From: Monocercomonoides exilis PA203
Taxonomy: Eukaryota; Protista; Preaxostyla
DNA: 64,000 nt
Direction of reading: 5' to 3'
Assembly: GCA_001643675.2 (NCBI GenBank)
Contig: LSRY02000030.1
Location: 372,001 to 436,000 of the forward strand
The notes under the pieces are model-generated. The model made no database searches. It saw nothing but the letters and a program-made list of their open reading frames with translations, and had not been told where the DNA came from. The translations under genes and the position numbers were made by a program. This document shows, one piece after another, positions 9,935 through 62,318 of the stretch; position 1 is the stretch's first letter; each line of letters starts with the position of its first letter.

Positions 9935-12900
9935 ATGCTGTCAGTGATGAGGATATTTGCTTTTTGCATTTATTTGCTACATGTGAATCTTATTGCTACA
10001 AAAGAAGACTTAAAGTGGATTGGAGTAAACATGAAAGAAGAAAAAGATTTCGAAATGAATGGTAATCTTATTCAGACCTACAAAATATTTTCAAATGATG
10101 GCTTTATGAATTATGAAGAAGATGGTGGAAGATTGATGGAAAAAACTAAAAAAAACGAAGTTCATGGAAGTATTTTTCAGAAAAATGAAGAAAAAAGCAA
10201 AGAAGAATTTGGAGGAGAAATTGGTATTTTGAAAAATGTGAATATTCAACAATTCAGCGAAATTGAGGGTTGCTTAGAATGCTTCAATTCATCAATCATG
10301 GAAATGAAACTGTTGATGAGAGAAAAAGGATCAAAAAGAATACTTATTGCAAAAAGAGGAAGCATTCTTTCAATGAGAGAGTGCATTCTTTTTGAAGGGC
10401 AACATTTATCTCCTTTTGAGTTAGAAGGGAGTTTTGGATCATTTGTGAACATTTCAATTCAGCAAAATGTTGAAGGTTTGAATATATTTTCTCCTCTTTT
10501 CACTTCTGAACAATTTAACAATGATATTTCAAAGTCTTCCATTATTTCGTTGAGTGAATCACATTTCTCGTCTTTTTGTGTTTCTTCTCCCCCCTTTCTG
10601 TCATCACCATCCATTCATCTTGTTTCCCTTTTTCATCTGAAATTTTTCAACATTTCATCAGCACCTGATACGTGCTCATCTCCAACCACAACATCAACCC
10701 AAACCACATGTCTTATGAATAGCTGCTCATTTTCTTCTGTTTTTGATGTGTATGATGGTGGGATTGTCACTTCCCTCAACAATCCATTGGCTTCCTTATC
10801 TGTTTCAAATACCTCATTCGTTTGGTGTTGTCGGACAAGAAATGTGAAATGCGAAGGAACTTCGGAGGTTTCGTTGAAACCAGACAGACAGAACGAAACA
10901 ACTGATGGAGCGAATGCATTTATTTGGTGCGAGTGGAACGGATCGAAGACAACAGGAACGAATGATTCGTGGATGGATATCACTTCAAATGGAGGAGCTA
11001 TTTGCATGTTTGAAAAATTAAACGCTATTGTTTCAATTGAACATTGTTTTTTCAATGATTGTTATGCAAATTATGATGGAGGAGGAATCATGTGTGCAAA
11101 TGTTTCTTCCATTCAGATAGCTAATAACACGTTCAATTCTTGTAATTCGAAAAGAAATGCTGGTGGAGGAATTTGCATTTATTCAATTTCATCATGCGTT
11201 CGGATCAGCGGATGTTATTTCGAAAATTGCAAAGCAAATAATTATGGAGGAGGATTATGCATTGATAATTTCAATACTTCAGGAACAATTTGTGTTGGAA
11301 CAGAAAATGGAGAAGTTAAGAGTGCATGCATATTTGATTGCAGTTTCACAACATGTTCAGTCACACACAATGGAGGCGGAGGCTTGTTTTGTCGAAAAGT
11401 GCCAGAACAATTCAAAATTAAGAGCATTCAGTTTATCTCATGTTCAGCATTTAGAGAGGGAGGAGGATTATGTTTGCATCCAAATCGAGCAACAGCACCT
11501 GATAATAAATTATATTGCTTCTTCTTATTATTTCATGAATGCAGTTACAGGGATGCAACTTATCCACGTGGAAATGATGCAATATATTACGACAATAACA
11601 ATTTGTACTTTGATTCTGGAAATCCATTCTATGAATGTTACACAACGAATGCAGATGATAAGAGGATCTGCTTTGCGTACAACTACTCGAATGCAGGTGC
11701 CTGGACATTTGATCAAACATCAAAAAAGGATTGGCTGAAAGACAAGACGATATATGTTTCAGTGAATGGGAGTGACGGATATGAGCTATGCGGGTCAAAT
11801 GAATCAAATCCATGTCTGACAGCGAAGAAAGCGTTTGAGATGTGTGAAGTGCAGATTAGCTTGGCAATCACACTGATGGAAGGGAATCACATAAGCGAGG
11901 CAACAACAATTGAGATTGGAGAGAAGAAGATTTCAGTCATTGGGAAAGGGAAAGATAAGAGTTCGATTGGAACACGAACCCTTTCATCAGCAAGAGCATT
12001 GTTCAGTGTCACCACAGGACACTTGGGAATGAGTCACTTGAAAGTTGATTGCAACTCAACAGCAGGAACTTCTCCGAGTGTGGTTGTGGTGTCTGACGGG
12101 AGTGGGTCACTCTCATTGGAAGATGTTTTGATCACCACGAGCAAAACAGGAGACTATGTGATATCATCATCAGTGTTTGTGGTGCCGCTGTCGCAGCTGT
12201 CGATGGTTGGTGTGGAGATCAAGGATATGAACATTTCTCAACCATTGTTCTCTGAGCCGGATCTATCTTCTTCTTCATTTTCTTCTTCTTCCCTTTTTTT
12301 GACAGCCACTTCATCTGGAGAGAGCACGCTGGCGAACTTAACAGTGAGGAATGTGAAGTTGACTGAAGGAGATGGGGTGGTTGTGGCAAAGAGTGTGGCA
12401 GAAGGGGAGACATTTGTTGTTCAGAATGCGACAATCGAGGATTGTGTGTGTGAGAATGGCAGTGGAGGAGGGATCAAGGTTGAGTTGGAAACAGATAAAA
12501 GCAAGCTCCAGGTTGAAGCAACAACAACAATCAAGAGATGCACAAGTGGCAAATATGGGGGAGGGATGATGCTGTATCTGGCTGACAACTCATTTGACTT
12601 CTCGATTGTATCAGTTGACTTTTCAGGGTGTTCTGCCTCATTGGGAGGGAATTATGTGTTTGTGAATGGGAGCGATTCAGCGAGCTGGGGAATAAGCTCC
12701 TCAACGCTGAATGTCCAGCATGATGAATCAAAATACAATGAGCTGGTGGGATATGATCGGAGTGACACAACAATGGGGCTGTTCCCACTGAATGTGTTTC
12801 TGGACAGATATCCAAGTGTAGCACATGTGGGGAAGGGGAAGGATGGGCTAGGTGGATACGACTCGTGGTTCTGTGGGTTTGATTATTATCCGTGTGCCAC

Positions 12901-15900: not shown

Positions 15901-18900
15901 TGGAGGAGGGCTGTTCATTGATGGGTCAGACCCACGTGCGAATTATGGAAATGAAAGTCCGATTCCGCCTCTGAATTTCAAGATTGTGAACATCCTGTTT
16001 GTGATGAATGAGGCACATGTGGGGAAAGACATATTTGTCAGATGCCACTCGATTGCTCACCAGATCAACGAAACACTGTTTGCGCTGAACTACAACCAGG
16101 AGTCACTGAACTCGAACAACTCGATCTGTGGGAGGGATGGTTGGAGCGAGGGAGATGTTGATCTGATCCCGCTGATCACATTCTATTATTCGGCACAGGT
16201 GTTTGTGAGTGGGAGAGGGAGTGATGGGAGGGGATGTGGGGCACAGAGCAACCCATGTGCGAGCATCGACTGTGGGGTTGAGCACATCCAAGAAGGGGTG
16301 ATGAATGGGATTCTGATTGATGGAGAAGGGTTTGTAAGGAAGGAGTGTGTGATTGGAGATCTGGTTGTGAATTCATGGAAAAAGACACAGGGGATTGTTC
16401 GGCTGAACTGCAAGATTGAGAAATCAGGTGAGAAGGATTGTGTGATGGAGTTTGTGAATGAATGTTCAGTGGAGAGGTGCTCATTCCAGTTTGAAGATGG
16501 ATTTGAGTCAACTCACAATTGTCTCATGAAAGTGAAGAATGGAATGACGAAAATACAAGAATGTGAATTCTTCTCTTCTCCAACAACAACAGTTGAGTTT
16601 ATGAAGTTGAACAGTTCAATTGTGAGTGTGGAAAGTGGAGAGCTGAAGATACTTGATTCAACATTCAGGGATATTCATTCAACAAGATCGGTGCTTTCAT
16701 TTTGTGAAGAATCAGAAGTGACAATTGATGAAGCAAGAATATCGAATATCGAATGTGAGGGAGATGTTGTGAGTGTTGGAGGGAAAGTGAAAGTGGAGAT
16801 GAAAGAGATGGAAGTTGAGAATGTGACTGTGATGTCAAAGGGGTGTGTGATTGGGATGGAAGATGCTGAGCAAGGTGTGAGTGTGGTGAACAGCTCATTT
16901 GGAATGTGTATGAATTCAGTTGATAAGGGAAGCATGATGCAGATCAGGAATTCCAAAAATGTGAGGATTGAGGCATGTGTGTTTGATGGAGAAATAAAAG
17001 ATGAAATAGTCAATGAAGAAAACAATAGAAAAGAAGGATTATGCAAATGGAATGGGTCATTAGTTGGCGTTGAGAAGAGCATAGTTGAGATGAGGGAAAC
17101 AACAATCAGAAATAGCAAGGGAGGTGGGCTGTGGGTGAGTGGAGGGAATGTGAAGATTGAGAAAGGAGAGTTTGAGAACAATAATCCATCGATTGAGGGA
17201 TATCCATCAGCTCGAAGGAATGCGATTTGTGAAGGGAATGGGGAGTTGAATGTTGTGAGTGTGAAAGGTGGAGATGGATGGAAGGACAACTCATCATTGT
17301 GGATATTGGATGAGGGATGCGAATTGGGAGGGATAGCAACTGAAAGAGGATCATCATTTTTCATCCCCATTTTGGAAGAGGTGAAGAATGTTTCTCAGCC
17401 AAATGGGGATGTGGAGTTGATGATTGTGGGAAAGTTGTTACTGCCATGTGATTCGTCGGTGAAGATGAGCATGAAAAATGGGGATGAAGAGGAGATTGTG
17501 AGAAAGGGGATTGAAGAAGAAGGGTTTGTGTCAGAGAATGAGATTCACTCAGTTATTTCATGTTCGGAATGGGAGAAAGTGAGAGAAGAGACAGAAGTGA
17601 GTGTGTGGATTGTGTTTGGAAAAGCAGACTCTCCTTCATCAACAGAGCGATTTATTGTGAAGAACAAGAGTGAAAGTGTTGGAAAAGAAGATGAAAAACT
17701 TGTTAAAGGAGAGAAAGAAGGAAAGTCTCATTGGTTGCTGATTGTTATAATCATGGCAGTTATTCTATTAATTGTTCTGATTGGATTTATTTTGTTTGTT
17801 GTCAGATGGAGTAAGCAAAAGAGAAGAACAAAGGAATTGGAAGAGATTGTGAATGACACGGTGAGAAAAGATCCAAAGCTGATTGAGATGACAACAATGG
17901 AGATGTCTCCAGAGGAGCAGTGGAGGAGAGCCGAGAAGGAGGCAGAGAAGAAGAATGAAGAGAAAATGAAGAAGAGGGTTTATGAGAAAAGCTTGGGACA
18001 TTCAGAGTCTTCAGAGCATCTTCTATCTGAGAGTGGCTCAACCGAATATATTTTGGGGAGAGATTCAGACAAAATACCTCAATGGATGCTGGAGAAAGTG
18101 GATGAGAAAGAAGAAGAGGAAACAAGAAAGAGAACACCATCACCATCAATTTCATCAACTTCAACAACAGATTCAGATTCAACATTTGTTCGATCGGAGA
18201 GTCTGTGTCCCGCCACCTCGTCGATGTCCAATCTGGTGGATGCAATGGCCTGTTCATCACCACATGAGAAGCTGATTGTGGATCTGAGGGATTCACTGTT
18301 CATGTTGTTGCATGGAAGAAATAAAACAAAGGAGATGGCGATTGGCACTCTGCAGGAGAGGGAGCAGACAGCTGCTCAGATCCTGTTCTGGGTGGCCAAT
18401 CTGGCACTCCACTCGTTTGATGAGATGGAAAATGGATTATCTTCCCTCTCCACTCTGAGTCCTCACATTGTACTGTTTTCTGAGCACATGGTGATCTGCA
18501 TCGTGATGCACTCTGACTTCTCGTCTGATGATGATTCAGACTCATCCTCCATCTCTTCATCAACAGTTGTGACATCTGCCAGTGATGATGATGATAGTGA
18601 TTCTCTGCCCTCGTCTGCCTTTGAGGATGATGAATACAACAGAAAAGAGTGTTTGAGGTGGATGGCACCAGAGCTACTGACAAACAAGAAGATGGGAGCA
18701 ACGAAGGAGTCGGTGGTATTCTCGATTGGGATGATGCTGTGGGAGTGCTTGACTCTGGAGATCCCGTTTGGAGAGTATGAAGGGGAAGTGGCTGGGCAGA
18801 AGATTGTGAATGGGGAGAGGCCGGATTTGTCAGTTGTGAAAAGTTTCACGATGAAAGGGATAATTGGGAAATGTATTGAAGAAAGTGCAGAAGAGCGGAC

Positions 18901-19048
18901 GGGGCTGGGGGATGTGAAGAGGGGGCTGACACAGTGTCTGCCAGCAGGGTCGCTGATCTTCACGATGACAGATGCGATGGACTATGTTGGAGAGTCATGT
19001 GCCGATGGAGGAAGCGAGTGTTTGGTGTCGAACACAGGAACAGAATGA
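9935..19048 (+). CDS. Giant receptor-like type-I membrane protein with beta-helix-like ectodomain and TKL-like pseudokinase (gene A, 3037 aa, intronless)
   Basis: Single 3037-aa ORF with an N-terminal hydrophobic signal, GG(G/A)(I/L/M) and FxxC/FxxN repeats and five V-x-x-G-x-D...CG...(P)C cap motifs. TM HWLLIVIIMAVILLIVLIGFILFVVRW+KQKRR is followed by kinase C-lobe motifs LRWMAPE, VFSIGMMLWECLTLEIPF and GERP. Confidence 0.9.
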   Translation: MLSVMRIFAFCIYLLHVNLIATKEDLKWIGVNMKEEKDFEMNGNLIQTYKIFSNDGFMNYEEDGGRLMEKTKKNEVHGSIFQKNEEKSKEEFGGEIGILKNVNIQQFSEIEGCLECFNSSIMEMKLLMREKGSKRILIAKRGSILSMRECILFEGQHLSPFELEGSFGSFVNISIQQNVEGLNIFSPLFTSEQFNNDISKSSIISLSESHFSSFCVSSPPFLSSPSIHLVSLFHLKFFNISSAPDTCSSPTTTSTQTTCLMNSCSFSSVFDVYDGGIVTSLNNPLASLSVSNTSFVWCCRTRNVKCEGTSEVSLKPDRQNETTDGANAFIWCEWNGSKTTGTNDSWMDITSNGGAICMFEKLNAIVSIEHCFFNDCYANYDGGGIMCANVSSIQIANNTFNSCNSKRNAGGGICIYSISSCVRISGCYFENCKANNYGGGLCIDNFNTSGTICVGTENGEVKSACIFDCSFTTCSVTHNGGGGLFCRKVPEQFKIKSIQFISCSAFREGGGLCLHPNRATAPDNKLYCFFLLFHECSYRDATYPRGNDAIYYDNNNLYFDSGNPFYECYTTNADDKRICFAYNYSNAGAWTFDQTSKKDWLKDKTIYVSVNGSDGYELCGSNESNPCLTAKKAFEMCEVQISLAITLMEGNHISEATTIEIGEKKISVIGKGKDKSSIGTRTLSSARALFSVTTGHLGMSHLKVDCNSTAGTSPSVVVVSDGSGSLSLEDVLITTSKTGDYVISSSVFVVPLSQLSMVGVEIKDMNISQPLFSEPDLSSSSFSSSSLFLTATSSGESTLANLTVRNVKLTEGDGVVVAKSVAEGETFVVQNATIEDCVCENGSGGGIKVELETDKSKLQVEATTTIKRCTSGKYGGGMMLYLADNSFDFSIVSVDFSGCSASLGGNYVFVNGSDSASWGISSSTLNVQHDESKYNELVGYDRSDTTMGLFPLNVFLDRYPSVAHVGKGKDGLGGYDSWFCGFDYYPCATITHAAQVRCADTNKKIELDSGFELAEAVGMTDGHEWEISCATKGMEVGVKAPENFESSCMIEVQSKCSMRNIKFSIPSALSGASSSSLISSNSTLLTLTDCSVACSSENSIGYCFVNVIGGKVKVEGLVITETLRFGEHSLIEFGEGVESVVFCGCEVNNIEKRSGDGGWVSGVVGAERGEGKNGIIVIETCAVKRCRCACGRGGGMSVVVKGEGGVVVNGSCVIDGCEAKGSEESSDGRSEGRGGGMMILMESRDGSMKMESGREGLFGENNKAQFGKDVFVECGGGVLLEWKVNGSSFSFFDFGVIPTDVLKLCGSEDGREGEVIPLFVYLCSMGTKLRVDGRGERALDQSHCGFEEFGCLTIDYCVGKRASSNVNEIEVISESWIKNEMKVISFDLSVSGKEEGMKVFVRDEGSMNQNWMIECTKSFEMGYLSFVLNEEMNGRRSGFIYSSSSSSTITIRSCSVTFGNDEMIGYNVICVEGGGLTVNGFVMEVGVRMNGKSPIVVSNGVELEMNDSRMSGVEVVGGSGGGGCLNVEMGVNGNVNVEGCNLSSACSGGSGMKGGGMKISVGKGGRLEMKGVKYSGCEVPREDVEEGERGMGGGMFAELANQMGTFVMEGMEFEGCNAWKGKNVFVSGWDLREIVNEEHFKWEMSSEELGSLDELCGWERASTDEGYVIPLVVYLWRNWSGDGFVSREKGGDFSGCGYSEAPCSSIDHLISLRYPTLGERETHIAIVGSGLLSHSISFSSSISESPKVVIEGTKKGTGVTISDEDENGLSDDGSMISSNVSLSFVNVSFTKPSITTHHEVLIESSGTNTLLSVSDCSFGPGKGVAESFGYCLMRVNGGSVFIEKCSLSLISELKGLIAFSPSAHEVTLQNVNISFADVTERSLISMMEEDNQMNGEQKVFSNGSKPVLRVVGCSFANITNERTGASVVDVGSFEDGVECVMDECSMSSCKSGLSDEGGGMRVVLKSGESVLKVNGSSFSICKCSSETGCGGGLFIDGSDPRANYGNESPIPPLNFKIVNILFVMNEAHVGKDIFVRCHSIAHQINETLFALNYNQESLNSNNSICGRDGWSEGDVDLIPLITFYYSAQVFVSGRGSDGRGCGAQSNPCASIDCGVEHIQEGVMNGILIDGEGFVRKECVIGDLVVNSWKKTQGIVRLNCKIEKSGEKDCVMEFVNECSVERCSFQFEDGFESTHNCLMKVKNGMTKIQECEFFSSPTTTVEFMKLNSSIVSVESGELKILDSTFRDIHSTRSVLSFCEESEVTIDEARISNIECEGDVVSVGGKVKVEMKEMEVENVTVMSKGCVIGMEDAEQGVSVVNSSFGMCMNSVDKGSMMQIRNSKNVRIEACVFDGEIKDEIVNEENNRKEGLCKWNGSLVGVEKSIVEMRETTIRNSKGGGLWVSGGNVKIEKGEFENNNPSIEGYPSARRNAICEGNGELNVVSVKGGDGWKDNSSLWILDEGCELGGIATERGSSFFIPILEEVKNVSQPNGDVELMIVGKLLLPCDSSVKMSMKNGDEEEIVRKGIEEEGFVSENEIHSVISCSEWEKVREETEVSVWIVFGKADSPSSTERFIVKNKSESVGKEDEKLVKGEKEGKSHWLLIVIIMAVILLIVLIGFILFVVRWSKQKRRTKELEEIVNDTVRKDPKLIEMTTMEMSPEEQWRRAEKEAEKKNEEKMKKRVYEKSLGHSESSEHLLSESGSTEYILGRDSDKIPQWMLEKVDEKEEEETRKRTPSPSISSTSTTDSDSTFVRSESLCPATSSMSNLVDAMACSSPHEKLIVDLRDSLFMLLHGRNKTKEMAIGTLQEREQTAAQILFWVANLALHSFDEMENGLSSLSTLSPHIVLFSEHMVICIVMHSDFSSDDDSDSSSISSSTVVTSASDDDDSDSLPSSAFEDDEYNRKECLRWMAPELLTNKKMGATKESVVFSIGMMLWECLTLEIPFGEYEGEVAGQKIVNGERPDLSVVKSFTMKGIIGKCIEESAEERTGLGDVKRGLTQCLPAGSLIFTMTDAMDYVGESCADGGSECLVSNTGTE

Positions 19049-25000: not shown

Positions 25001-27423
25001 ACTCCATTCGAAACAACAATAGGCGATTTCCCATTCATTCTCACTCCCACTTCCATCACAAATCCATTCACAGTCAGCCCTCCTCCCTCAACACATATCA
25101 CATTGTATCCAATCATTTCATCATTTCTAAATGTGACTGAACAACTCCTGATTGTGATGGTTGATGATGATGATGATGAGTAAATAAATCCACTTCTCCT
25201 CCCATTCATTTCTTCATTCAGCACAAATGACAAATAACCCATCTCAAATGATTTTGTGCACTCGATCATCCAGTTTTGATTCATTGATCCTTCATCTCTC
25301 ACAAACACCTTCATCCCTTCTTCTTTCCCTGAAACACTCAAATCAAATGAAATCACTTTCATCTCATTCTTTATCCATGATTCTGAGATAACTTCGATTT
25401 CATTCACATTGCTGCTTGCTCTCTTCCCAACACAATAGTCAATTGTCAAACACCCAAACTCCTCAAACCCACAATGGCTCTGATCCAGTGCCCTCTCTCC
25501 TCTCCCATCAACTCTCAGCTTTGTTCCCATTGAACACAAATACACAAACAGCGGAATCACTTCCCCTTCTCTCCCATCCTCACTCCCACACAACTTCAAC
25601 ACATCTGTTGGAATCACACCAAAATCAAAAAATGAAAATGAGCTCCCATTCACTTTCCACTCCAACAACACTCCTCCACCACATTCAACAAACACATCCT
25701 TCCCAAATTGAGCTTTGTTATTCTCCCCAAACAAACCCTCTCTTCCAGATTCCATTTTCATTGAACCATCCCTGCTCTCCATCAAAATCATCATCCCTCC
25801 ACCTCTCCCTTCACTTCTCCCATCTGAACTCTCCTCTGAACCCTTCGCCTCACACCCATCAATCACACAACTCCCATTCACAACAACACTCCCTTCCCCC
25901 TTCACAACAACACTCATCCCTCCTCCTCTTCCACATGCACACCTGCACCTCTTAACAGCACACGTCTCAATCACAATTATCCCATTCTTCCCCTCACCTC
26001 TTTCTGCTCCAACCACTCCACTCACCCATCCCCCATCTCCACTTCTCTTCTCAATGTTGTTCACCTCACACCCACAAAACACAACTGATTCCACCCCTTC
26101 ACCAAACTCAATCAGCGAATGTTCTCCAAATCTCAAGGTCTCTGTGATCACCAATCCCTCCACTTTCACTTTTCCTCCAATCACATTCACAAAACAATAT
26201 CCAATGGAATTCTCAGAGGAACAAGCAACAGAACAGTCAGTGAGTGTGAGGAGTGTGGAGTTGGATGAGATCAGAGATGATGATGATGCACCAGACAGAG
26301 CAGATGGAATACTGAACTTGATGTTTCTCATTGAACATTTGCTCTGAACCTCAATCATACAAGATGACTCAAAATTCTCTGGTGCTTTCACACCAACCTC
26401 CATCCCTTTTGTGGCACATGAAATCTCCCATTCATGGCCATCTGTCATTCCAACTGCCTCAGCAAGCTCAAATCCCGAATCCAATTCGATCTTCTTGTTT
26501 GTGTCTGCACATCTCACCTGCGCTGCATGCGTGATGGTGGCACACGGATAATAATCAAACCCACAGAACCACGAGTCGTATCCACCTAGCCCATCCTTCC
26601 CCTTCCCCACATGTGCTACACTTGGATATCTGTCCAGAAACACATTCAGTGGGAACAGCCCCATTGTTGTGTCACTCCGATCATATCCCACCAGCTCATT
26701 GTATTTTGATTCATCATGCTGGACATTCAGCGTTGAGGAGCTTATTCCCCAGCTCGCTGAATCGCTCCCATTCACAAACACATAATTCCCTCCCAATGAG
26801 GCAGAACACCCTGAAAAGTCAACTGATACAATCGAGAAGTCAAATGAGTTGTCAGCCAGATACAGCATCATCCCTCCCCCATATTTGCCACTTGTGCATC
26901 TCTTGATTGTTGTTGTTGCTTCAACCTGGAGCTTGCTTTTATCTGTTTCCAACTCAACCTTGATCCCTCCTCCACTGCCATTCTCACACACACAATCCTC
27001 GATTGTCGCATTCTGAACAACAAATGTCTCCCCTTCTGCCACACTCTTTGCCACAACCACCCCATCTCCTTCAGTCAACTTCACATTCCTCACTGTTAAG
27101 TTCGCCAGCGTGCTCTCTCCAGATGAAGTGGCTGTCAAAAAAAGGGAAGAAGAAGAAAATGAAGAAGAAGATAGATCCGGCTCAGAGAACAATGGTTGAG
27201 AAATGTTCATATCCTTGATCTCCACACCAACCATCGACAGCTGCGACAGCGGCACCACAAACACTGATGATGATATCACATAGTCTCCTGTTTTGCTCGT
27301 GGTGATCAAAACATCTTCCAATGAGAGTGACCCACTCCCGTCAGACACCACAACCACACTCGGAGAAGTTCCTGCTGTTGAGTTGCAATCAACTTTCAAG
27401 TGACTCATTCCCAAGTGTCCTGT
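12014..27423. repeat. Giant inverted repeat: arms 12014-19476 and 19961-27423 (7463 bp each), 484-bp spacer
   Basis: Mirror coordinates sum to 39437 throughout (stops 19048/20389; inner ends 19476/19961; outer ends 12014/27423). The antisense ORFs in the track are duplicated with identical or nearly identical translations. Confidence 0.97.
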
Positions 27424-40304: not shown

Positions 40305-40586
40305 ATATCAGTGAGATATTTAGATAATATAATTATATAATAATTAGCATGCTTCAAACATCATATAAAATTGTAGTGATTTTATTAAAAAAAAAAGAAA
40401 TTGATCTTTCTTGAGGAGTGCCTTAAACAATTTATTGGATATATATAAATCTCAGAAATGATGGCTTTTTATTAAAAATAAAATTATTTTCAATTAGAAC
40501 GAAATTAAATTATGACTGATAAGTTTTATATCTTCAGAAATTTCTAATCGAAAATACGAAAAAAGGGCACCTTCCTGATTTTGGAG

Positions 40587-43731: not shown

Positions 43732-43768
<37 letters not shown>

Positions 43769-52900: not shown

Positions 52901-55900
52901 TTCGCACACAAGTGTGTTCATATGTGCTGATAGCGCGTTGACGCTGACACGCATTTCTGTGAAGGCCAAGGAAGAAGGGGGAGAATTGAACTATGGGGTG
53001 GTGTTTGGAAAGAAAGGAGTGATCTGCATCTCTTCTTTTTCGATCAAAAATGTTCAATTCGCTTCAGCAGCAATGTTTGGTGTCAGTGGGGAGAATGCTC
53101 ATTGCCGGGTGGAAGGCATTTCATGCTTGGAGTGCAGTGTGAGTGGAGAAAGAAATTTGATAGAAATTGGCGAAGGGGCATGCTTCTCGATGAACGATTC
53201 GAGCATTGGAACAGAGACGATTATTGAAAACAGCGGAATAGCAGTTGAGGAAGGAAAAGAGGTGGAAATGAGAAATGTCTCAGTGAAGGGTATTCGCAGG
53301 AGGAAAGGAGATGGAGGAGGATTGCGAGCGAGAAGCCACAACAACGTGATGCCATCCTCATCGATCATTGTTGATAGCTGCAGCTTTGAGGAATGCGAGG
53401 TGAATGAGGGAGGCAAAGGAGGTGGGGGGATGTGGATATCTGCTGGACCACCTTCAGTTGTGAGAGTTAGTTCATGCTCATTTCTTTCATGCACAGCCCC
53501 ATTTGATGAGTCAGTGGGATTTGGTGGAGGGATTTTCTTTTCTTTGACAAGTCCGACAACAGACTATGTGATAAGTGGGCCAATCTTTACAGCAGATCAG
53601 AAGAACCGTGCGAGATATGGAACGGACTTGTTTGTGGAGTCAGAGAAACTGGGTGTCAGCACAACGAATACAACGCTTCCCTTTTTGAAAGACATGCCTC
53701 TTGATGATGTGAATTCGATGTGTGGGTATGATGGGGATGACAAGACGAATGTGATTTCTCTGTTGTATTTTATCTTCGATGTGGGGGATACCATTCACGT
53801 CTCTTCTGCAGCAGGGCTGGATGTTGCACCGTGTGGGTTTGCTGCATATCCGTGCAAAACAATTCAGAAATCTCTCCAGCGGCAGGAAGGGAGTTCCAAG
53901 AGCATGATGCTTCATGGTGATTATGAATTGTTGGAAGATGTGCTGCTGTGTGAGGAGGGAAGAGTTGAAATGAAAGGAACAGAAGGAAGGAGCATTGTGA
54001 ATGTGAAAGGAGGCGATACAGCATCAGTGGGGGTTATCACATTGGCAGAAAGTGAAGGAGTGGAGTCAATGATTGCGTTGCTCTCATTCAGGGTTGGAGG
54101 GAGTGTAAAGCAGCACATAACCTTGATGTCACAAGAATCAGCTGGGAGTCTTCGAGTGAGTTTATGTGATTTTGCCCAACAGCCAGGAGAAGCAATTGTT
54201 GGCTATTCGCTGTTGAGGTGCATGAATGGGCAAGTGGAGATGAAGAGTGTGGAGATCAGAAGTGTTCGATTCAGCATGTCGCAGATCATCATATGCGAGC
54301 AGAATGCGATTGCTTTGTTGGAGAACGTTTCTGTGCAAAACACATCAACCACATCATCTGATGGGCTTGTCAAACTGGGTTCGATGTCTGTGGCAATGTC
54401 AATGAAGCGTTGCACATTTGAATCCCAAGCAGAGAAGTTGAGCTGTGTTGTTGTGAGATGTGAAAGCGCAAAGACTGTTGAGCTGGAGAATTGCACATTT
54501 AGCAACTATTCTGAGCACAATGGAAATGGAAGTGCAGTTGAATGCAAAGTGAGGGCAGGGAGCAGGGTGATGATTGTGGGAGGGAAGGCAAGCCATTGCG
54601 GATGCATTGGAGGATTTGGAGGAGGGATATTTGCACATGTGGAAATGGATGGGAAGTTTGGAGTTGGGAATTCGAGTGAAGAGATCACAGAGATGGCAAA
54701 TTGCCGAGCCGAAGCACAATCTCGAAGAGGAGGATTTGGAGGAGGGATAAGTGTGAGTGTGGATGAAGGATTCAGCTTATTTGCGATTGAGAATGTGGGC
54801 TTTTCTGAGTGCTCGGCATCGCAAAATGGGAAGAATGTATTTGTTGAGGCGTGGAATCTGAGCAAAGCAGTGACTGTGCAGACGTTGAATTTTGGATTTA
54901 ATACGGCAGTTGGAAGTGCAGATTTGGGTGAGTTGTGTGGGTTTGAGAACGAAAATGCGTTGTGTCCAATTCCTCTGGCGTTGTTTTTCAGAAAATTTTC
55001 TGGGCGGTGCTATGTGGGAGGAGGTGGAGTGGACTATCGGTTATGTGGGTATCAGGACTATCCATGCCAGACAATAGGATATGCAGGGGCTTCAAAATTC
55101 AACTCATCCGCAGCCAGCATTATTTTGCAGTCGACATTCACATTCAGAGACCAACTTCTGTTTGACTCACAGGATTATGAGATATTTGGGGAAGAAAATG
55201 CCACGATGATGAATGTGGCTGGTGGAGAGGGTGAGAAGGAAGAAGGGCTCATCGAGGTGAGGCGAACAGTTGGGGTTGGGCAAATCACTTTCAGGCATCC
55301 AGCATCGTTGGGATCAAATCGAAGCAGCCTGATGCTGTGTGATGGAGGAACGCTGAATGTTGTTGACTGCTCATGTGAGCTCAACTCAGGATCAGGGCTG
55401 GACTGTTCGTTCAGCTATTTTGTGTGCAAAGGAGGGCAATTGGGGATTGAGCGGTTTGAAACGAAGAATATCAAATTTGGCTTTGTTCCTTTGATGGTTG
55501 TTCGCAAAAGCGAGAGCATCGAAGCAAGAGTGTTGATGAGAAGTGTGAGCTTGGAGAATGTGTCAACGAAAAGCGAAGCAGGCGTTGTTGAAGTTGATGG
55601 TGCAGATAAGTTTGAGATGAATAATTGTTCAGCGAGTGCATCGACATGTGAGAGCTGTTCACTTGTTTCTGTTGCGAGGGTGAAAACGATGATGATGGGA
55701 AACAGCACAATGAGTGACTTTCAGCGGACAAATGGGTTTGGAGGAGTTGTTGTTGCGGTTGTGGAAGAAGGCGAAAAGACGATGATTGAAAAGTGCACGT
55801 TTGAAGGATGCAGCATTGAGGCAGCAAATATGAAAGGGGGTGTTGGTTATGTGAGTGTTGGAGGGGGAGGTGAAGTTGTGTTTGACTCAAACACCATCAG

Positions 55901-58900
55901 CAACAACAGTGTGGATGGAGAAACGGGGTTTGGAGGAGGGTTGCATGTTGAGCTGGAAGCAAGTGAGGTGAAATACTCATTCAAAAAAGATGAGTTTGAA
56001 GGGAACGAGGCAAAGAAGGGGAAGCATCTTTATCTGATCTGCCCATTGCCAAGGGAGACTGTTGATCCGTTGAGATTTGATTCTTCGTTCAGGGAAGACA
56101 TGAGAAATGAAGATGTGTGGGTGAAGAGCGGAGGCGATGGTCCAGCGGTGGATGAGACACTGAAGAAATATCTGTTTGCATCGAGTGAGGAGATAATGTT
56201 TGTGGACGATGCAACGGGGGATGATCGGGAAACGTGTGGAACAGTACTGTATCCGTGCAAGACTGTGGACGATGGGTTTTTGAAGATGAAGAGCAACCAG
56301 ACCACGATCCACGTTGTTGGGGCAGCTGTGCTTGGAGGAAGAATAGATCGAAATGGGACATCGCTCACTGTGCGAGGAGCAGCAGAGACATCCACGATTG
56401 ATGTTGAAGATGGAGGATGCATTGTTCTGAAAAAAGGAAAAGGAACAACAACACTCACATTGAGTTCGCTGAGAGTTATTCTCCCGGGCAGAGCAACAGA
56501 ACAATCGCTTGTGGCTGTGAGTGTGGGAAGGATGACGATTCGGGACTCGAATGTGGAAGGGAAAGAGGCGAATGGAAAAGAAACAGACATGTGGGTTGGG
56601 ATTGCCGAAGGAGGGGAGATGCAACTGGTGAATGTGAGTGTGAAGGATGTTGTGGAAAGGGGGAAGAAGGGAGTGGTTCTGATGAAGGGAGGGGAGCTGT
56701 ATTGTGAAGCGTTGAAATTGAAGGAGATCTCAGCAGATGGAGAGGGGCTTATATGGGTGGGAGAGGATGCAGATGCATCGTTGAATCACTTTGCAGCAGA
56801 AAATTGCGAAGTGGGCAGTGGCTCGATTGTTTGCTTGAAAGGGGTGGGGGGGATGTGTTCTGTGAGTGAAAGCAGATTTGAGAACTGTTCGAAACTTCAT
56901 GGAGATGGAGGAGCAATTTGGTGTGAGATTGGAAAAGGAAAGATGACGATGAATGGAACAGTGTTTGATTCGTGCTCAGTCGATGCTTTGAATGGCTATG
57001 GAGGAGCAGTGTATATGAAGGATGTTGGAAACACGAATCATGACTTTGTGTTTTCAGATCTGAACTTCATGGGAAATGGTGCCTTTGTGGGGAAAGATAT
57101 GTTTGTGATGGCGAACAGTCTGAATGAATCGATTGCTCCATCAAAATTCATTTTTGAGTATTTTGACGATGTGGGCAGTGTGATTGCAGATCTGAAGGGG
57201 ATGGATGCAGACTTGTTCAGTGGTGAGCCGATTGATCTTTTGCTGCTTTTGAAGGAAGCTCAACTGAGCACTGTTCACATCTCTTCTGAGGGAATGGACA
57301 TTCTGGGATGTGGAATGGAAGAGCATCCGTGCGCCTCTTTTTGGCGAGCATATAGAAATCTGAATGCATTGGAGAGAAACAGAAATGTTGTTGTTTATGA
57401 ATCGACAATGGTTGACAATCATTTTGACGTTTCATCGTTGTGTGTGAAGTCAAAGCAAGACGACCAATATGCAATGGTTGCGATGAAAGAAAACATCACA
57501 GAAACAAAGGATGAATGGATATTCTTGAATGAAGAGGAAGCACGGTTCGAGAGGATAATGCTCGCTGTTCCATCGCGTTTCAGCAGCAACATCGAGACTC
57601 TGATACTGTCGAGACCAGAAAGTGGGAGCATGACCTTGCTGAGCTGTTCATTTGGAAGCATCAACTCCACCAACAATCCAGTGGAGTTCAACCTGATTCG
57701 ATCTGAAAGTGGGCTGGTGTCTGTTGATGGGTGCTCAGTTGACATCCGTTTGTTTGCAAGAGTTCCATTTGAGTTTCATTCGTCAGTGAGTTTGAATGGA
57801 TTGAATGCGACAAATATTCAAGTGTCTTCGAGCACAACAGGAGGAGCCATGCATGTTGTTCTGATGAGCAGAGAAATGTTCAATGTTAACAGAACAAATG
57901 TTGTGAACTGCAGCTGCTCCACAACTTTGGGGAGAGGTGGAGGACTGTATGTGGACTGCTCACAGTCACAGGCTGACACACCTATTAGCTTCTGTGAAGG
58001 AGTTGCAATACAAAAGAATGAAGCGTTTATTGGTTCGGATTTGTTTGTTGCTTCATTTGATTTGAACAAGACTGTCACCCCAACAACCCTTATGTTTTCA
58101 TTTGATGATGCGAAACACTCGCCAACGATGTTTTGTGGAAGTGACAAAGAGCACACCGACACGGATCTTTTCCGCTTTTTGGAGGGGTTCAGAAATGCAA
58201 AGGTGTTTGTATCTTCAAATGGTTACGATGTGATGAGGTGTGGAAGCGAAGAAGATCCGTGCCAGACTTTGTGGAAAGGAATGGGGCAGATTGAAACAGG
58301 GTCTGAGCAGAAAAAACTTTTGATTGATGGTTCGATAGAAATGGCAAACAGATACGACTTTTCAAACTTTGTGTTTGAGCCTCCGTGTGATGCTGTTGAG
58401 GAGCACAAGCGATCGGTGCTGCAGATTGTTAACCATCATGATGGAGAAGAAATATTGGGGATGAATGAAAGGAATATTTCTTTCAACAAGATAGACATGG
58501 AAGTTTTCGAAGATGTCTGGAACAGGGCTGGAGGAGTGTTTGTGAGCGAAAATGGAGTGCTTTCGTTCAGTGATTGCTCACTCAAGTCAATTGTCAGTGC
58601 AGAAAAGCAGATAGAAATATGTTTTGTTCAACTCAAGAGTGGAGTGCTTGATGCAGAAAAGTTGATCATTGAAAGCATGAGAATGAAGCAATCGATTGTT
58701 ATGATTGAAGTGGGAAGCAATGCATATCTCAAAGATATTGAAGTGAAGTCCTGCATGCTTGTGGAAGGGTGTGTTGTTCAGATCGTTCACAAAGTGGCAG
58801 AGACGAAAAATGGAGATGGCTCCGTGATTGAAGTGAATGGAAGTGTGTTTGGGTCAATAACAAGAAGCGGGATGGGATCAAGTGTGCTGGAAAGTGGGGA

Positions 58901-61900
58901 TAACTGCGAGGTGTTGATGAAAGCAAACAACAGTGTTTTCGAGCTTTGCCGATCGAGCGAGTCAAGAAGAGGAGGGGTGATGTGCTTTGAGCTGAACAAC
59001 GAAGGTTCGTTTGTGATGAGCAATTCGAAGGTGATGCAGTGTGGGTGTTCGACAGAAAGCGGGCGAGGGGGTGGCATGTATTTGAGTTCGCATCTGAGTG
59101 GCAAGCTTTTATTTCTATTCCAGGGGATGAAATTTGAAGGAAATGTGGCAGAGACAGGGAAGGATATTTTTGTTGAGTGCACGAACATATCGGAACAGGT
59201 TAACGAAAGCCAGTTCCGAATGGATTTGCGGGAGGGGGTCTTCAACAGGATTGGGGCGATCTATGGGATTGATCTGCTCCACTCTGAGCCAGTGGATCTG
59301 ATCTCGTTCATCACAGTTTATCAATCGTCGATCATATTTGTGAATGGGAAGGATGGAAAAGGGAGAAACGACCGGCAGTGCGGGAGCTCTCGCGAGCCGT
59401 GCATGAGCATTGGATATGGATTTGACCATCTGGTGTTTGAGGATATTGTGCTGTTGGTGATCGATGGAGAGGGTGTTATTGAGAAAGAGCTGGATCTGGA
59501 TGAGATCAGTGTTCAATCTCGCTCGAGAAGCACATCCAAGATATCCTTTGACGCAAGAATAAGCGCATCACGCGAGTATCTTCTTCAAACAAAGGAACAT
59601 GTGGAGCTTTCTTATTTGGAGTTCTTGTATCCATCCAGAGGCGCATTCTGCCACAACGCTTTTCTCTGCTCGTCCAGCGGCTCGATCGTGATATCTTCGT
59701 GTATCTTTCACTCAGATGATGATGCTGGATCGTGTTCAATTTCAGAAGTGATGAGATTGGCAAACTGCAATTGCACAGTTGAGCACTGCAGCATAGAGAA
59801 CATCATTTGTGAGAAAATATGTCAGTGCGAAAATGCAGAAGTGAGCATAAGTGATCTTCGATTGAATCATATTGACACAAAGAGTTGCTTTTGTTTCAGC
59901 GGAGATCAGCCAAATTCTGTTCTGATAAAGGAATTGGTAGTTGAGAATACTGTTTGCAGAGGAAACATGCTTTTATTTTGCGATGATTCATATGCAGAGA
60001 GCGGACAATTCATTCAAGAAAATATTGTTTTATCGCTGTGTCGATTCAAAAACATTTCAATGGAAGGGTCAAATGGATCTGTTTTGATGATGAACTCACA
60101 CTCTCACACTTTCAGCATGGCAAATTGTTCGTTTTCAGAATGCCGAACGAGTGTCGAAAAGGGGGCACTTGCCACATTTTCTGGTGTATCATCGGTCTTA
60201 ATTGATTCGTGTGTTTTTGAAGGGCAGACAATGACAAATTGCAACGAATTGGCTTCATCAAGAGAGATTTGTCACTGGAACGGATCATTGGTGGATATGT
60301 GCAACAGTTCAGGAACTTTTGAAGACACAACGATTTCGAAAGGCAATTTTGGAGGAATGACGATATTTGGAGGGGATGTGACGATAAGTGAAAGTGAGTT
60401 TGTGCTCAACAACCCCTCTATTGAGGGATATCCATCAGCTCGAAGGAATGTGATTTGTGAAGGGAATGGGGAGTTGGATGTTGTGAGTGTGAAAGGGGGA
60501 GATGGAATGTTGCCAAATACATCATTGTGGATATTGGATGAGAGATGCGAATTGGGAGGGATAGCAACTGAAAGAGGATCATCATTTTTCATCCCCATTT
60601 TGGAAGAGGTGAAGAACACAACACAGCCAAATGGGGATGTGGAGTTGATGATTGTGGGAAAGCTGCTTCTGCCATGTGATTTGTCGGTGAAGATGAGCAT
60701 GAAAAATGGGGATGAAGAGGAGATTGTGAGAAAGGGGATTGAAGAAGAAGGGTTTGTGTCAGAGAATGAGATTCACGCATTCATTTCATGTTCAGAACTG
60801 GAGAAAGTGAGAGAAGAGACAGAAGTGAGTGTGTGGATTGTGTTTGGAAAAGCTGATTCCCTTTCATCAACAGAGCCATATATCCTGAAGAACAGGAGTG
60901 AAAGTGCTGGAAAAGGAGATGAAAAACTTGTTAAAGGAGAGAAAGAAGGAAAGTCTCATTGGTTGTTGATTGTTATTGTGCTTGTTGTGATATTATCGAT
61001 TATTCTTGTTATTGCTGTTGTTCTGGCTGTTCGGTGGAGAAAGCAAAAGAGAAGAACGAAGGAATTAGAAGAGATTGTGAATGATACAGTGAGGAAGGAT
61101 CCGAAGGCATTCGAGATGGTGACGATGGAGATGTCTCCAGAGGAGCAGTGGAGGAGAGCAGAGAGGGAGGCAGAAAAGAAGAATGAAGAAAGGATAAAGA
61201 AAAGAATATATGAGACGAATATGGAACATTCAGAGTCATCAGAGCATCTTCTGTCAGAGAGCGGATCAACTGAATACATATTGGGAAGAGGCTCAGACAA
61301 GATTCCTCAATGGATGTTGGAGAAAGTTGATGAGAATGAGGAGGAAGAAGAGACAAGAAAGAGAATACCATCACCATCGATCTCATCCACTTCAACAACT
61401 GATTCAGACTCAACTTTTGTTCGATCAGAGAGTCTGTGTCCAACCACCTCATCGATGTCGAATCTGGTGGATGCGATGGCCTGCTCGTCTCCTCATGAGA
61501 AGCTGATTGTGGACTTGAGGGATTCACTGTTCATGTTGTTGCATGGGCTGAACAAGACAAAGGAGATGGCGATTGGGACTCTGCAGGAGAGGGAGCAGAC
61601 AGCTGCTCAGATCCTGTTCTGGGTGGCCAATCTCGCACTCCACTCCTTTGATGAGATGGAAAATGGATTATCTTCTCTTTCCACTCTGAGCCCTCATATT
61701 GTTCTATTTTCTGAGCACATGGTGATCTGCATTGTGATGCACTCCGACTTCTCATCTGATGATGATTCAGACTCATCATCCATATCTTCATCAACTGTTG
61801 TGACATCTGCCAGTGATGATGATAGCGAATACTCTCTTCCTTCATCAGCGTTTGAGGATGATGAATACAACAGAAAAGAGTGTTTGAGGTGGATGGCGCC

Positions 61901-62318
61901 AGAGCTACTGACAAACAAGAAGATGGGAGCAACGAAGGAGTCGGTGGTATTCTCGATTGGGATGATGCTGTGGGAGTGCTTGACTCTGGAGATCCCGTTT
62001 GGAGAGTATGAAGGGGAAGTGGCTGGGCAGAAGATTGTGAATGGGGAGAGGCCAGGGATGGGAGAGGCGGAGCAGTCGAGCTATCTGGGGCTGGTGAAGA
62101 AGTGTGTGTCGCAGGATTGGAGAGAGCGGGGGAGCCTGAATGAGTTGAAGAGAGAGTTCATCCAGCGGTTTCCGGCAGGATCGTTGATAATGACGATGAC
62201 AGATGCGCTGTGCTGCTATTCGGCAGATGGGAACAAGAAGGAGCCCTCTTGTGGAAGTGGGAACGGAAACGGAGAAGGAACAGAAGGAAGCAGTCGGATT
62301 GTTCTTCTTGTGCAGTGA
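49920..62318 (+). CDS. Giant receptor-like type-I membrane protein with TKL-like pseudokinase (gene C, 4132 aa, intronless)
   Basis: Single ORF with a signal peptide, eight CG...(P)C-capped ectodomain modules and TM HWLLIVIVLVVILSIILVIAVVLAVRW. The cytoplasmic region is nearly identical to A/B, including LRWMAPE and LWECLTLEIPF. Confidence 0.9.
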   Translation: MGGSYFSFCLITLIFILDWSVQLDFDETTARQVSCIHGYSCRSLSQLGDENIACNKKDSAISRLFHKRQYSSAQRHCSIQFHLDLVNASLSASEVIFLQNTSTLMQIDKFSIVYLSGCTFIQKGRNAISTVHSSFGKVLFSNISANNEHCQGLLTPLTTSPSSDNSFSPDGFVGVTKSSFCSVSLRCRPFIACSAMHQISLSSSILCNISTTQAGTGVQTNENGPQCISTIYSCVFETVSGVYTNGIAPGVEGLGLELFNNTHQKCKNEMTKGVRRTEAIDTTISYEEFANMTTPIPEGKIGIHGNEPDICGSCILMFNNINASLKISHSTFCNCSASYIGGALSTYLIGSLIISNCSFNNCKSASFGGAVFARAIRQCYSFSDSEIDNCASGTGGGIVVYDGVQQNTDCVEASEDGKKFMCHNSSFIVSSTANYGGGISLFGSVTEMFLMKSCFFSCCTAKNNAKGGGIYVKIDNHRTTDPKIFFFCFFANNMAGTETGGKDVFLNDTNGKCVNESPFVWSCTLTDGGSQLIHCNASCHANDEWLPYGVSSRIVEEENGEDSDLCGCFSNEVCQTMKHAIENSMTTQSCAITMLSHVHTLFATDGVAVNSKKAVVRGEGEESTSLEVSQIDAMRSLFEVTSGSLTVELLHIAFASDPKSSLARVSENEGELILTSLEIDSGSESLGREFESPLVVMAGGHLIVSDSKIRFFKLTECSLLTMPVGSYVQMSNTTIANITRSQGSGSVLEHTFGEREWLRMDGCIVENCRSKDDGGCFKIDVGEENGIELRNSSATNCACSTENGKGGWLCAGTVKLSTQMVIGGMKFSGCEGWKGKCVFVEAPELARIVSKASFNFSIDGMSDEDLMGYEGGNRGFDVCLWVYFVDVVSPGYVGGGTAHDFSGCGVERYPCSTISKLVNVRHRGIPKAIVICAPFECTEPVAMNTDEWDVRSETNESFIDIGFGGDASSEGLIETSVRCSFRDISFEAVAKREDSHTSVFICADSALTLTRISVKAKEEGGELNYGVVFGKKGVICISSFSIKNVQFASAAMFGVSGENAHCRVEGISCLECSVSGERNLIEIGEGACFSMNDSSIGTETIIENSGIAVEEGKEVEMRNVSVKGIRRRKGDGGGLRARSHNNVMPSSSIIVDSCSFEECEVNEGGKGGGGMWISAGPPSVVRVSSCSFLSCTAPFDESVGFGGGIFFSLTSPTTDYVISGPIFTADQKNRARYGTDLFVESEKLGVSTTNTTLPFLKDMPLDDVNSMCGYDGDDKTNVISLLYFIFDVGDTIHVSSAAGLDVAPCGFAAYPCKTIQKSLQRQEGSSKSMMLHGDYELLEDVLLCEEGRVEMKGTEGRSIVNVKGGDTASVGVITLAESEGVESMIALLSFRVGGSVKQHITLMSQESAGSLRVSLCDFAQQPGEAIVGYSLLRCMNGQVEMKSVEIRSVRFSMSQIIICEQNAIALLENVSVQNTSTTSSDGLVKLGSMSVAMSMKRCTFESQAEKLSCVVVRCESAKTVELENCTFSNYSEHNGNGSAVECKVRAGSRVMIVGGKASHCGCIGGFGGGIFAHVEMDGKFGVGNSSEEITEMANCRAEAQSRRGGFGGGISVSVDEGFSLFAIENVGFSECSASQNGKNVFVEAWNLSKAVTVQTLNFGFNTAVGSADLGELCGFENENALCPIPLALFFRKFSGRCYVGGGGVDYRLCGYQDYPCQTIGYAGASKFNSSAASIILQSTFTFRDQLLFDSQDYEIFGEENATMMNVAGGEGEKEEGLIEVRRTVGVGQITFRHPASLGSNRSSLMLCDGGTLNVVDCSCELNSGSGLDCSFSYFVCKGGQLGIERFETKNIKFGFVPLMVVRKSESIEARVLMRSVSLENVSTKSEAGVVEVDGADKFEMNNCSASASTCESCSLVSVARVKTMMMGNSTMSDFQRTNGFGGVVVAVVEEGEKTMIEKCTFEGCSIEAANMKGGVGYVSVGGGGEVVFDSNTISNNSVDGETGFGGGLHVELEASEVKYSFKKDEFEGNEAKKGKHLYLICPLPRETVDPLRFDSSFREDMRNEDVWVKSGGDGPAVDETLKKYLFASSEEIMFVDDATGDDRETCGTVLYPCKTVDDGFLKMKSNQTTIHVVGAAVLGGRIDRNGTSLTVRGAAETSTIDVEDGGCIVLKKGKGTTTLTLSSLRVILPGRATEQSLVAVSVGRMTIRDSNVEGKEANGKETDMWVGIAEGGEMQLVNVSVKDVVERGKKGVVLMKGGELYCEALKLKEISADGEGLIWVGEDADASLNHFAAENCEVGSGSIVCLKGVGGMCSVSESRFENCSKLHGDGGAIWCEIGKGKMTMNGTVFDSCSVDALNGYGGAVYMKDVGNTNHDFVFSDLNFMGNGAFVGKDMFVMANSLNESIAPSKFIFEYFDDVGSVIADLKGMDADLFSGEPIDLLLLLKEAQLSTVHISSEGMDILGCGMEEHPCASFWRAYRNLNALERNRNVVVYESTMVDNHFDVSSLCVKSKQDDQYAMVAMKENITETKDEWIFLNEEEARFERIMLAVPSRFSSNIETLILSRPESGSMTLLSCSFGSINSTNNPVEFNLIRSESGLVSVDGCSVDIRLFARVPFEFHSSVSLNGLNATNIQVSSSTTGGAMHVVLMSREMFNVNRTNVVNCSCSTTLGRGGGLYVDCSQSQADTPISFCEGVAIQKNEAFIGSDLFVASFDLNKTVTPTTLMFSFDDAKHSPTMFCGSDKEHTDTDLFRFLEGFRNAKVFVSSNGYDVMRCGSEEDPCQTLWKGMGQIETGSEQKKLLIDGSIEMANRYDFSNFVFEPPCDAVEEHKRSVLQIVNHHDGEEILGMNERNISFNKIDMEVFEDVWNRAGGVFVSENGVLSFSDCSLKSIVSAEKQIEICFVQLKSGVLDAEKLIIESMRMKQSIVMIEVGSNAYLKDIEVKSCMLVEGCVVQIVHKVAETKNGDGSVIEVNGSVFGSITRSGMGSSVLESGDNCEVLMKANNSVFELCRSSESRRGGVMCFELNNEGSFVMSNSKVMQCGCSTESGRGGGMYLSSHLSGKLLFLFQGMKFEGNVAETGKDIFVECTNISEQVNESQFRMDLREGVFNRIGAIYGIDLLHSEPVDLISFITVYQSSIIFVNGKDGKGRNDRQCGSSREPCMSIGYGFDHLVFEDIVLLVIDGEGVIEKELDLDEISVQSRSRSTSKISFDARISASREYLLQTKEHVELSYLEFLYPSRGAFCHNAFLCSSSGSIVISSCIFHSDDDAGSCSISEVMRLANCNCTVEHCSIENIICEKICQCENAEVSISDLRLNHIDTKSCFCFSGDQPNSVLIKELVVENTVCRGNMLLFCDDSYAESGQFIQENIVLSLCRFKNISMEGSNGSVLMMNSHSHTFSMANCSFSECRTSVEKGALATFSGVSSVLIDSCVFEGQTMTNCNELASSREICHWNGSLVDMCNSSGTFEDTTISKGNFGGMTIFGGDVTISESEFVLNNPSIEGYPSARRNVICEGNGELDVVSVKGGDGMLPNTSLWILDERCELGGIATERGSSFFIPILEEVKNTTQPNGDVELMIVGKLLLPCDLSVKMSMKNGDEEEIVRKGIEEEGFVSENEIHAFISCSELEKVREETEVSVWIVFGKADSLSSTEPYILKNRSESAGKGDEKLVKGEKEGKSHWLLIVIVLVVILSIILVIAVVLAVRWRKQKRRTKELEEIVNDTVRKDPKAFEMVTMEMSPEEQWRRAEREAEKKNEERIKKRIYETNMEHSESSEHLLSESGSTEYILGRGSDKIPQWMLEKVDENEEEEETRKRIPSPSISSTSTTDSDSTFVRSESLCPTTSSMSNLVDAMACSSPHEKLIVDLRDSLFMLLHGLNKTKEMAIGTLQEREQTAAQILFWVANLALHSFDEMENGLSSLSTLSPHIVLFSEHMVICIVMHSDFSSDDDSDSSSISSSTVVTSASDDDSEYSLPSSAFEDDEYNRKECLRWMAPELLTNKKMGATKESVVFSIGMMLWECLTLEIPFGEYEGEVAGQKIVNGERPGMGEAEQSSYLGLVKKCVSQDWRERGSLNELKREFIQRFPAGSLIMTMTDALCCYSADGNKKEPSCGSGNGNGEGTEGSSRIVLLVQ

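Follow-up and report, generated by a model that had tools for sequence, protein, structure and literature searches.

Receptor-type genes in the window

We examined a 64-kb window (C26:372001-436000) of the Monocercomonoides exilis ONT assembly (PMC8767320), and genome searches covered 82,301,135 bases in 101 contigs. Three of its genes, A, B and C, are large paralogues that are intronless, as predicted, judging from their open reading frames, and their protein matches carry MONOS tags. Gene A (9935-19048, + strand) encodes an intact protein of 3037 amino acids, supported by the reading frame, an exact protein in NCBI, hydropathy, module motifs and fold; it belongs to a subfamily of about 30 receptor-pseudokinases (the A subfamily), with a predicted signal peptide, tandem beta-helix modules, one transmembrane (TM) helix and a half-kinase. 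Gene C (49920-62318, + strand) is an intact frame of 4132 amino acids with eight Cys-capped module motifs. Gene B (20389-29466, − strand) is a chimeric pseudogene interrupted by two in-frame TAA stops (codons 221 and 477), and its annotation consists only of MONOS_16066, a 2339-aa model that begins downstream of both stops. The fourth, kinase-less relative of the original prediction, gene D (3438-5836, + strand), is indeed a relative, but a distant one (21-23% amino acid identity): it has one module, a predicted signal peptide, a weaker TM helix and a Lys-rich tail. Its main exon served as the search query, and its two exons, separated by a single 53-bp intron (3505-3557), were joined for the frame check. 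The genetic code is standard, with internal TAA and TAG absent from A, C and the neighbouring genes, and the neighbours ending in TAA or TAG.

Other features of the window include a non-coding dispersed repeat at 7373-9495, possibly a non-autonomous element, with a second copy near 43.7-44.2 kb (43738-44187) and internal copies of about 110 bp in direct and inverted orientation (7537-7647, 7767-7879, 8023-8135). A spliced gene for an ABCC/MRP-type ABC transporter (31853-37435, − strand) carries an acidic N-terminal repeat rich in Glu and Lys (36860-37290) as well as inserts rich in Ser, Pro and His. It is followed by a G3BP-like gene, recognised by eye (37980-40307, − strand; NTF2-like N-terminus, RRM-like domain, Ser-rich linkers), and by a LolD/MacB-type ABC ATPase (41145-42533, + strand) with bacterial-like motifs and a long low-complexity C-terminal extension.

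Predicted protein architecture

Proteins of the A/B/C type are built from a hydrophobic N-terminus, several modules, each opening with a Cys-Gly-x-Pro-Cys cap, a single membrane helix and a cytoplasmic tail of about 410 residues. Modules 1-2 of A were modelled as a pair of right-handed beta-helices (mean pLDDT 71, with a poorly predicted leader part; mostly 70-93 in the first beta-helix). The best PDB matches of these modules were PL6 lyases, tailspikes and antigen 43, with low TM-scores, and the Atlas neighbours of the A head were Preaxostyla clusters and Chlam_PMP/Beta_helix/DUF1565 proteins. The TM helix of A (17720-17815, + strand; residues ~2596-2627) varies among paralogues and has counterparts in B, C and 55 of 62 representatives. 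Sequence and fold models together predict a type-I receptor architecture with a beta-helix (pectin-lyase/Pmp-like) ectodomain, that is, a signal peptide, modules and a single TM helix. The TM segment itself forms a small second divergence peak (median identities 71% in DNA and 53% in amino acids) between the homogenised stalk and the conserved juxtamembrane region.

The tail of A contains a degenerate TKL-type half-kinase (18240-18935, + strand) in which the C-lobe helices and the APE motif are kept, the N-lobe is unrecognisable and the activation segment bears a Ser/Asp-rich insert. It matches PF07714 above the Pfam cut-off, at positions 161-255 only (its last third). HMM matches were to the TKL kinases ZAK, TAK1, TNNI3K and ILK (E ~1e-7), and Foldseek gave weak matches to IGF1R/IR/BRAF/BTK (E ~1e-3) from a low-confidence cytoplasmic model (pLDDT 45) that recovers the kinase C-lobe helices after a disordered region. 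HRD, DFG and VAxK were found in none of the 62 representative tails, a GxGxxG string in 2 and APE in all 62. Because the three catalytic motifs are missing from every representative, we classify the tail by its motifs as a TKL-derived pseudokinase and reject an active TKL or TK kinase (VAIK, HRD and DFG all lacking). The earlier claim of a conserved pseudokinase tail on a large type-I protein family thus agrees with what motifs, Pfam and fold models predict. A membrane-anchored half-kinase of similar kind occurs in Blattamonas nauphoetae (BLNAU_17738). The same type of dead half-kinase is also seen in a 1792-aa membrane protein that lacks Cys-capped modules and comes from a Logan contig (P0236), possibly of another oxymonad.

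The A/B palindrome and the chimeric gene B

Genes A and B lie tail to tail, and 12014-19476 differs from 27423-19961 by 5 mismatches in 7,463 bp. The left palindrome arm (12014-19476, + strand) comprises the body, TM helix and tail of A, and the right arm (19961-27423, − strand) those of B; in both, near-identity runs 428 bp past the stop codon into the 3' flank. The spacer between them (19477-19960) is 484 bp long, AT-rich and non-palindromic, and its B-side part prolongs a native 3' flank that is common to the paralogues on contig C21. Since this native flank reaches farther on the B side, a simple transfer from A to B is improbable.

The abrupt switch to near-identity at 12014/27423 is exact and in frame, as originally predicted. 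It marks the end of the latest homogenisation tract; the real junction of head and body in B falls about 125-140 bp upstream of it, around 27548-27560, where the conserved start of module 2 is located. From there outwards, the head of B and about 1.8 kb of upstream DNA (27548-31221, − strand) are foreign to the A subfamily: in the genome search, this stretch of about 3.7 kb was 78-80% identical only to loci on contigs C60 and C63, which we infer to be MONOS_8232 and MONOS_5693 from two matches each at ~80%. As protein, the B head is 57-82% identical to MONOS_5693 and MONOS_8232. The ectodomain body of B is near 100% identical to that of A and 16-34% identical to that of MONOS_5693, and the ectodomain bodies of MONOS_5693 and MONOS_8232 are about 6-40% identical to that of B. 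By these sequence comparisons B is a true chimera, with MONOS_5693-type upstream DNA and head on an A-type body. The linker of about 125 bp between the junction and the palindrome (27424-27547, − strand) is A-subfamily-type DNA, up to 85% identical to other paralogues, and is not A's own; it is what remains of an older junction where module 2 starts. The head/body join therefore came first, and homogenisation with A, up to 27423, followed recently. The 20% divergence of the B head from its nearest relatives likewise dates the head swap as old.

The stop-interrupted head that had been noted in one copy is that of B, with in-frame TAA at 28806-28804 (codon 221) and 28038-28036 (codon 477). A non-standard code with TAA and TAG read as Gln was considered for these stops and rejected, given the absence of internal TAA/TAG from A, C and the neighbours and the use of both as terminators. 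Both stops occur without differences in short-read contigs, the second in those of runs X1 and X3 (one sample) and the first in an X1 contig among the matches listed. Short-read contigs of both runs span the foreign-head join (27488-27910), and such contigs cover most of the B head without differences and at single-copy depth, apart from two small gaps in one X1 contig; fragmentation keeps them from bridging 27423 or the palindrome arms. In the earlier 454 assembly, the MONOS_16066 model begins just after the junction and has two of B's three private residues. RNA contigs on the body come from many different paralogues, and RNA pieces on the B head derive, among the matches listed, from relatives.

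Gene C and its inverted partner

Gene C belongs to a distinct subfamily of three genes on C26 that are 95-97% identical including the head. Its ectodomain is 21-25% identical to A's throughout, and at 60368 it switches to an A-subfamily-type stalk, TM helix and tail (60368-62888, + strand). This switch is common to all three members of the subfamily. From 60368, C is 88.8% identical to A over 1,690 bp, so that the near-identity between C and A that had been proposed from about 60420/17192 does not hold, and its A-type stretch is 83-89% identical to all A-type paralogues, the ordinary family level. The exact match of C is to its inverted tail-to-tail partner just beyond the window, L001 (C26:444310-454309), with zero mismatches from 60551 to at least 62888. 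Conversion of C from A was accordingly rejected. A constant body, as first described for A, B and C, is thus a property of the A subfamily of about 30 members but does not extend to the ectodomain of C.

Gene conversion among 22 paralogues

The body of A has about 30 relatives at 88-93% identity; almost all of them lie on contigs C26 and C21, and their matches share one starting point. We analysed 22 genes (A, B and 20 of these relatives), of which 10 are broken copies. Among them we found 88 identical runs of at least 150 bp. When trees of the head, four body segments and the tail were compared across segments, 29 of 30 comparisons were rejected by the AU test; head and tail trees conflict, and the paralogues are mosaics with incongruent segment trees, as had been predicted. 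Four-gamete incompatibility in the body was 0.30 for sites within 20 bp of each other and rose to 0.49 for those more than 100 bp apart (permutation p = 0.003). Identical tracts, tree conflict and incompatibility rising with distance are the marks of concerted evolution by interlocus gene conversion, which operates in this family.

Near-identical DNA is accounted for by local inverted gene pairs. The inverted pair L012/L016 is near-identical from A-coordinate 11886 and the inverted pair L007/L009 from about A-coordinate 10599, and in both pairs the front ends differ, as they also do in C/L001. Tract ends therefore vary by pair (12014, 11886 and ~10599 in A-coordinates, 60551 in C), so that neither a fixed recombination site nor an expression locus is evident, and a fixed switch site or shared recombination boundary was rejected.

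Divergence of the head and selection

The divergence island of the A subfamily is the first beta-helix (10850-11750 in A, + strand). Its median DNA identity is 65%, and it reaches at least 85% in 4 of 208 non-palindromic pairs, compared with 91% and all 208 pairs (>85%) for the body, a contrast that is inflated by our having gathered the paralogues by body similarity. As a partial control for this choice, the best full-head relatives in the whole genome were 75% (A) and 80% (B) identical. In the pairs L010/L019 and L001/L017, leaders are 92-97% and bodies 91-94% identical, and the first beta-helix 65-68%. The hyper-divergent N-terminal head of the original prediction is in this sense confirmed within the A subfamily; it is not universal, because the heads of the C subfamily are 95% identical.

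Across 13 near-complete genes, dS was highest in the head (0.8-1.25), lowest in the ectodomain body (0.14-0.28) and intermediate in most of the tail (0.55-0.8). The cytoplasmic region, which had been described as near-identical, is so within palindromes, but elsewhere, at this dS, it is conserved as protein only. The ratio dN/dS was about 0.3 in head and body alike and 0.05-0.15 in the tail core (juxtamembrane and proximal pseudokinase region). In the M1a/M2a comparison, M2a was favoured in the head and also in the body control, both of which recombine; since the body control was significant too, the site model is uninformative about positive selection specific to the head. The suggested region-by-region dN/dS analysis gave the head no distinct signal. 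Four-fold sites have a lower GC content in the head (0.22-0.32) than in the body (0.43-0.51), as more frequent conversion of the body could produce. The receptor bodies (12000-18000 and 51000-62000) also show a strong G-over-C skew on their coding strand (0.3-0.5), not seen in the heads, which parallels the difference in GC at four-fold sites.

In other duplicated genes, a 'peak of divergence' between homogenised flanks marks selection against conversion (PMC3924837). Such a peak can also persist once a region has become too diverged for conversion. Selection possibly keeps the heads of the A subfamily different. With neighbours that are 91% alike outside one domain and 35% diverged within it, the family offers a clean natural test of conversion versus selection.

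Proposed mechanism and alternative explanations

We consider it probable that these genes form a birth-and-death family of type-I receptors reshuffled by unprogrammed homologous recombination at three scales, with selection on the head and a scaffold function of the tail as its putative components. The three scales (short tracts, arm-to-arm copying and exchange between subfamilies) are each shown by sequence comparison. Through short ectopic conversion tracts (~100-900 bp), ectodomain bodies within the A subfamily stay ~91% alike and are mosaic throughout. Long arm-to-arm copying makes inverted neighbours near-identical over kilobases and stops at the head, where homology drops. Rare ectopic exchange at conserved module-start or stalk motifs joins heads, modules and tails across subfamilies, and B and C are its products. 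The first beta-helix may escape homogenisation through selection for differing, probably glycan-binding, surfaces, through identity below the threshold for conversion, or through both. The conserved juxtamembrane region and half-kinase would act as a non-catalytic scaffold linking binding to signalling or uptake. Surface display, binding of glycans or bacteria by the tip module and the scaffold role of the tail are putative. The recombination process itself is of an already known kind.

A more far-reaching version is conceivable but rather doubtful. Under it, about a tenth of the genome would be a repertoire for recognition: selection would preserve differences between the tip beta-helices of the receptors (e.g., for bacterial surface glycans), recombination at module-start motifs would actively make new combinations of head, stalk and tail, expression would be variegated between cells and signalling by all members would pass through the conserved dead half-kinase, amounting to an immune-like or prey-recognition system in an amitochondriate commensal.

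An unlikely alternative is that the pattern is a largely neutral by-product of a repeat-prone genome that makes inverted duplications and converts similar DNA, the heads having drifted past the homology threshold and their diversity being unselected. The equal dN/dS of head and body, the nearly one-half of sampled copies that are broken, the inclusion of non-coding 3' flank in the homogenised arms and the existence of other gene types in inverted identical pairs (the short head-type genes on C53, C71 and C80) are all as this explanation would have it. It fits less well with purifying selection everywhere (dN/dS ~0.3, and 0.05-0.15 in the tail core), with the retention of open frames of 9-12 kb in many copies, with a divergence island that coincides with one structural domain and has homogenised DNA on both sides, and with the similar combination of TM helix and dead half-kinase in Blattamonas.

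The original prediction had drawn an analogy to trypanosome VSG, Borrelia vlsE and chicken Ig genes, which share with the M. exilis family a variable N-terminal part, a conserved C-terminal part and many broken copies. Those systems have a dedicated expression locus and directional conversion from donor to acceptor within a cell lineage, and VSG expression is monoallelic. None of these features is seen in M. exilis: the dispersion of numerous intact copies, each with a leader of its own, speaks against a dedicated expression locus, and the recombination boundary is not fixed. We regard it as quite improbable that programmed or somatic diversification of this kind, with few expression loci fed by silent or broken donors and one member per cell, is at work here. 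The 10 broken copies among 22, the modular make-up of head and body, and the position of two of the four tract ends in palindromes (12014, 11886) within 130 bp of each other at the start of module 2 would suit it; yet tract ends vary among pairs, intact members are spread genome-wide, and RNA contigs on the body stem from many paralogues (weak evidence, as the culture was bulk). Furthermore, the B head, at 20% from its nearest relatives, reflects an old swap whose product is a pseudogene, and no alternative join of the B head was seen among the matches listed in the DNA runs, whose contigs drop rare variants. As a mechanism the analogy is not supported: no single expression site is evident, no somatic mosaics were found in the assembled contigs of bulk runs, there is no shared recombination site, inverted pairs explain the near-identity, and the head has no distinct dN/dS.

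It is highly improbable that the arms and chimeras are products of ONT fold-back reads, collapsed repeats or polishing. The perfect kilobase-long arms do come from an ONT assembly with a read N50 of 8.9 kb (PMC8767320), and the short-read contigs do not reach across 27423 or the arms. Against an artefact, the spacer is non-palindromic, the heads differ, the junction is in frame and the differences are scattered, short-read contigs contain the B head with both stops and its join to family-type DNA, the 454-assembly model beginning just after the junction carries two B private residues, and collapse cannot yield short-tract mosaicism among dispersed copies. The collapse or mis-assembly that had been raised as a concern is thus not what we find.

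Family size and comparison with known families

The preferred reading of an unprogrammed, recombining receptor family applies to a very large set of genes. A 33-nt degenerate tail motif had 842 exact matches in the genome, compared with 0 for the reversed control. Clustered at 50% identity, proteins with this tail fall into about 70 groups; they are 416-4070 aa long and carry 0-7 module caps. Relatives are annotated as 'putative Protein tyrosine and serine/threonine kinase' or as uncharacterized. Open frames of 9-12 kb are intact in many copies, and the intact members, with their own leaders, are dispersed over the genome. A-type heads occur on bodies of 1676-4273 aa, and among 120 such proteins modules are missing, replaced or hybrid.

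The family is most likely the published TKL expansion of M. exilis (PMC6759080), given the same genome, the same Pfam family (PF07714) and many paralogues in both. The accessible passages of that publication count 332 tyrosine kinases, 320 of them TKL, as the largest gene family, compared with 842 loci here from one tail motif; those passages make no mention of a beta-helix ectodomain, a membrane anchor, loss of catalytic motifs, palindromic pairs or shuffling. The M. exilis kinase family is also described as overlapping 'unclassified repeats' (PMC8767320). The repertoire is therefore not undescribed, as had been suggested, since the family is already published as the largest of M. exilis; what stands of that suggestion concerns the architecture and the shuffling, of which we found no description in the searchable literature. 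A literature search for oxymonad receptor or surface families gave nothing specific. At least 842 loci of 8-9 kb would amount to roughly 7 Mb (an estimate) and probably make up some of the 'unclassified repeats' in this genome. The largest gene family of M. exilis would then have to be reread as giant beta-helix membrane proteins with a dead half-kinase, not as signalling enzymes. If the heads bind differing bacterial glycans, they would make up a recognition repertoire of a protist, with a bearing on feeding or symbiosis in oxymonads.

Transmembrane kinases of Entamoeba histolytica have a Cys-rich ectodomain instead of a beta-helix and generally keep their kinase motifs. They form a far smaller family than that of M. 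exilis but are likewise gut-protist receptor kinases; in EhTMKB1, 35 members are at least 95% identical, and few copies are full-length (PMC2880585). DGF-1 of Trypanosoma cruzi resembles the M. exilis family in its hundreds of very large genes and pseudogenes, its pectin-lyase-fold ectodomain and its reticulate evolution via recombination or gene conversion (PMC9967923); DGF-1 differs in having 8-9 C-terminal TM helices and no kinase, and the likeness between the two is one of features. MHC genes, plant R genes and opsins also combine concerted evolution with a local divergence peak, possible donors among pseudogenes and novel haplotypes by exchange (PMC3924837), and concerted evolution of paired copies is shared with palindromes that undergo arm-to-arm conversion. 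Compared with the MHC, R-gene and opsin families, that of M. exilis is much larger and shuffles whole modules, and selection at its divergence peak is putative.

Inverted pairs elsewhere in the genome

Contigs C53, C71 and C80 (e.g., C53:344876-351475) carry short genes with A-type heads in tail-to-tail pairs that have identical scores and lie 3-5 kb apart. These genes seem too short for the long body and constitute a second palindromic family. Close pairs of the tail motif numbered 4 among the first 100 matches, compared with about 1.2 expected. On contig C1 there are three tail-to-tail pairs (2293/7547, 75592/80821 and 189562/194793) with nearly equal motif spacing (5229-5254 bp), which suggests joint duplication of both members of a pair.
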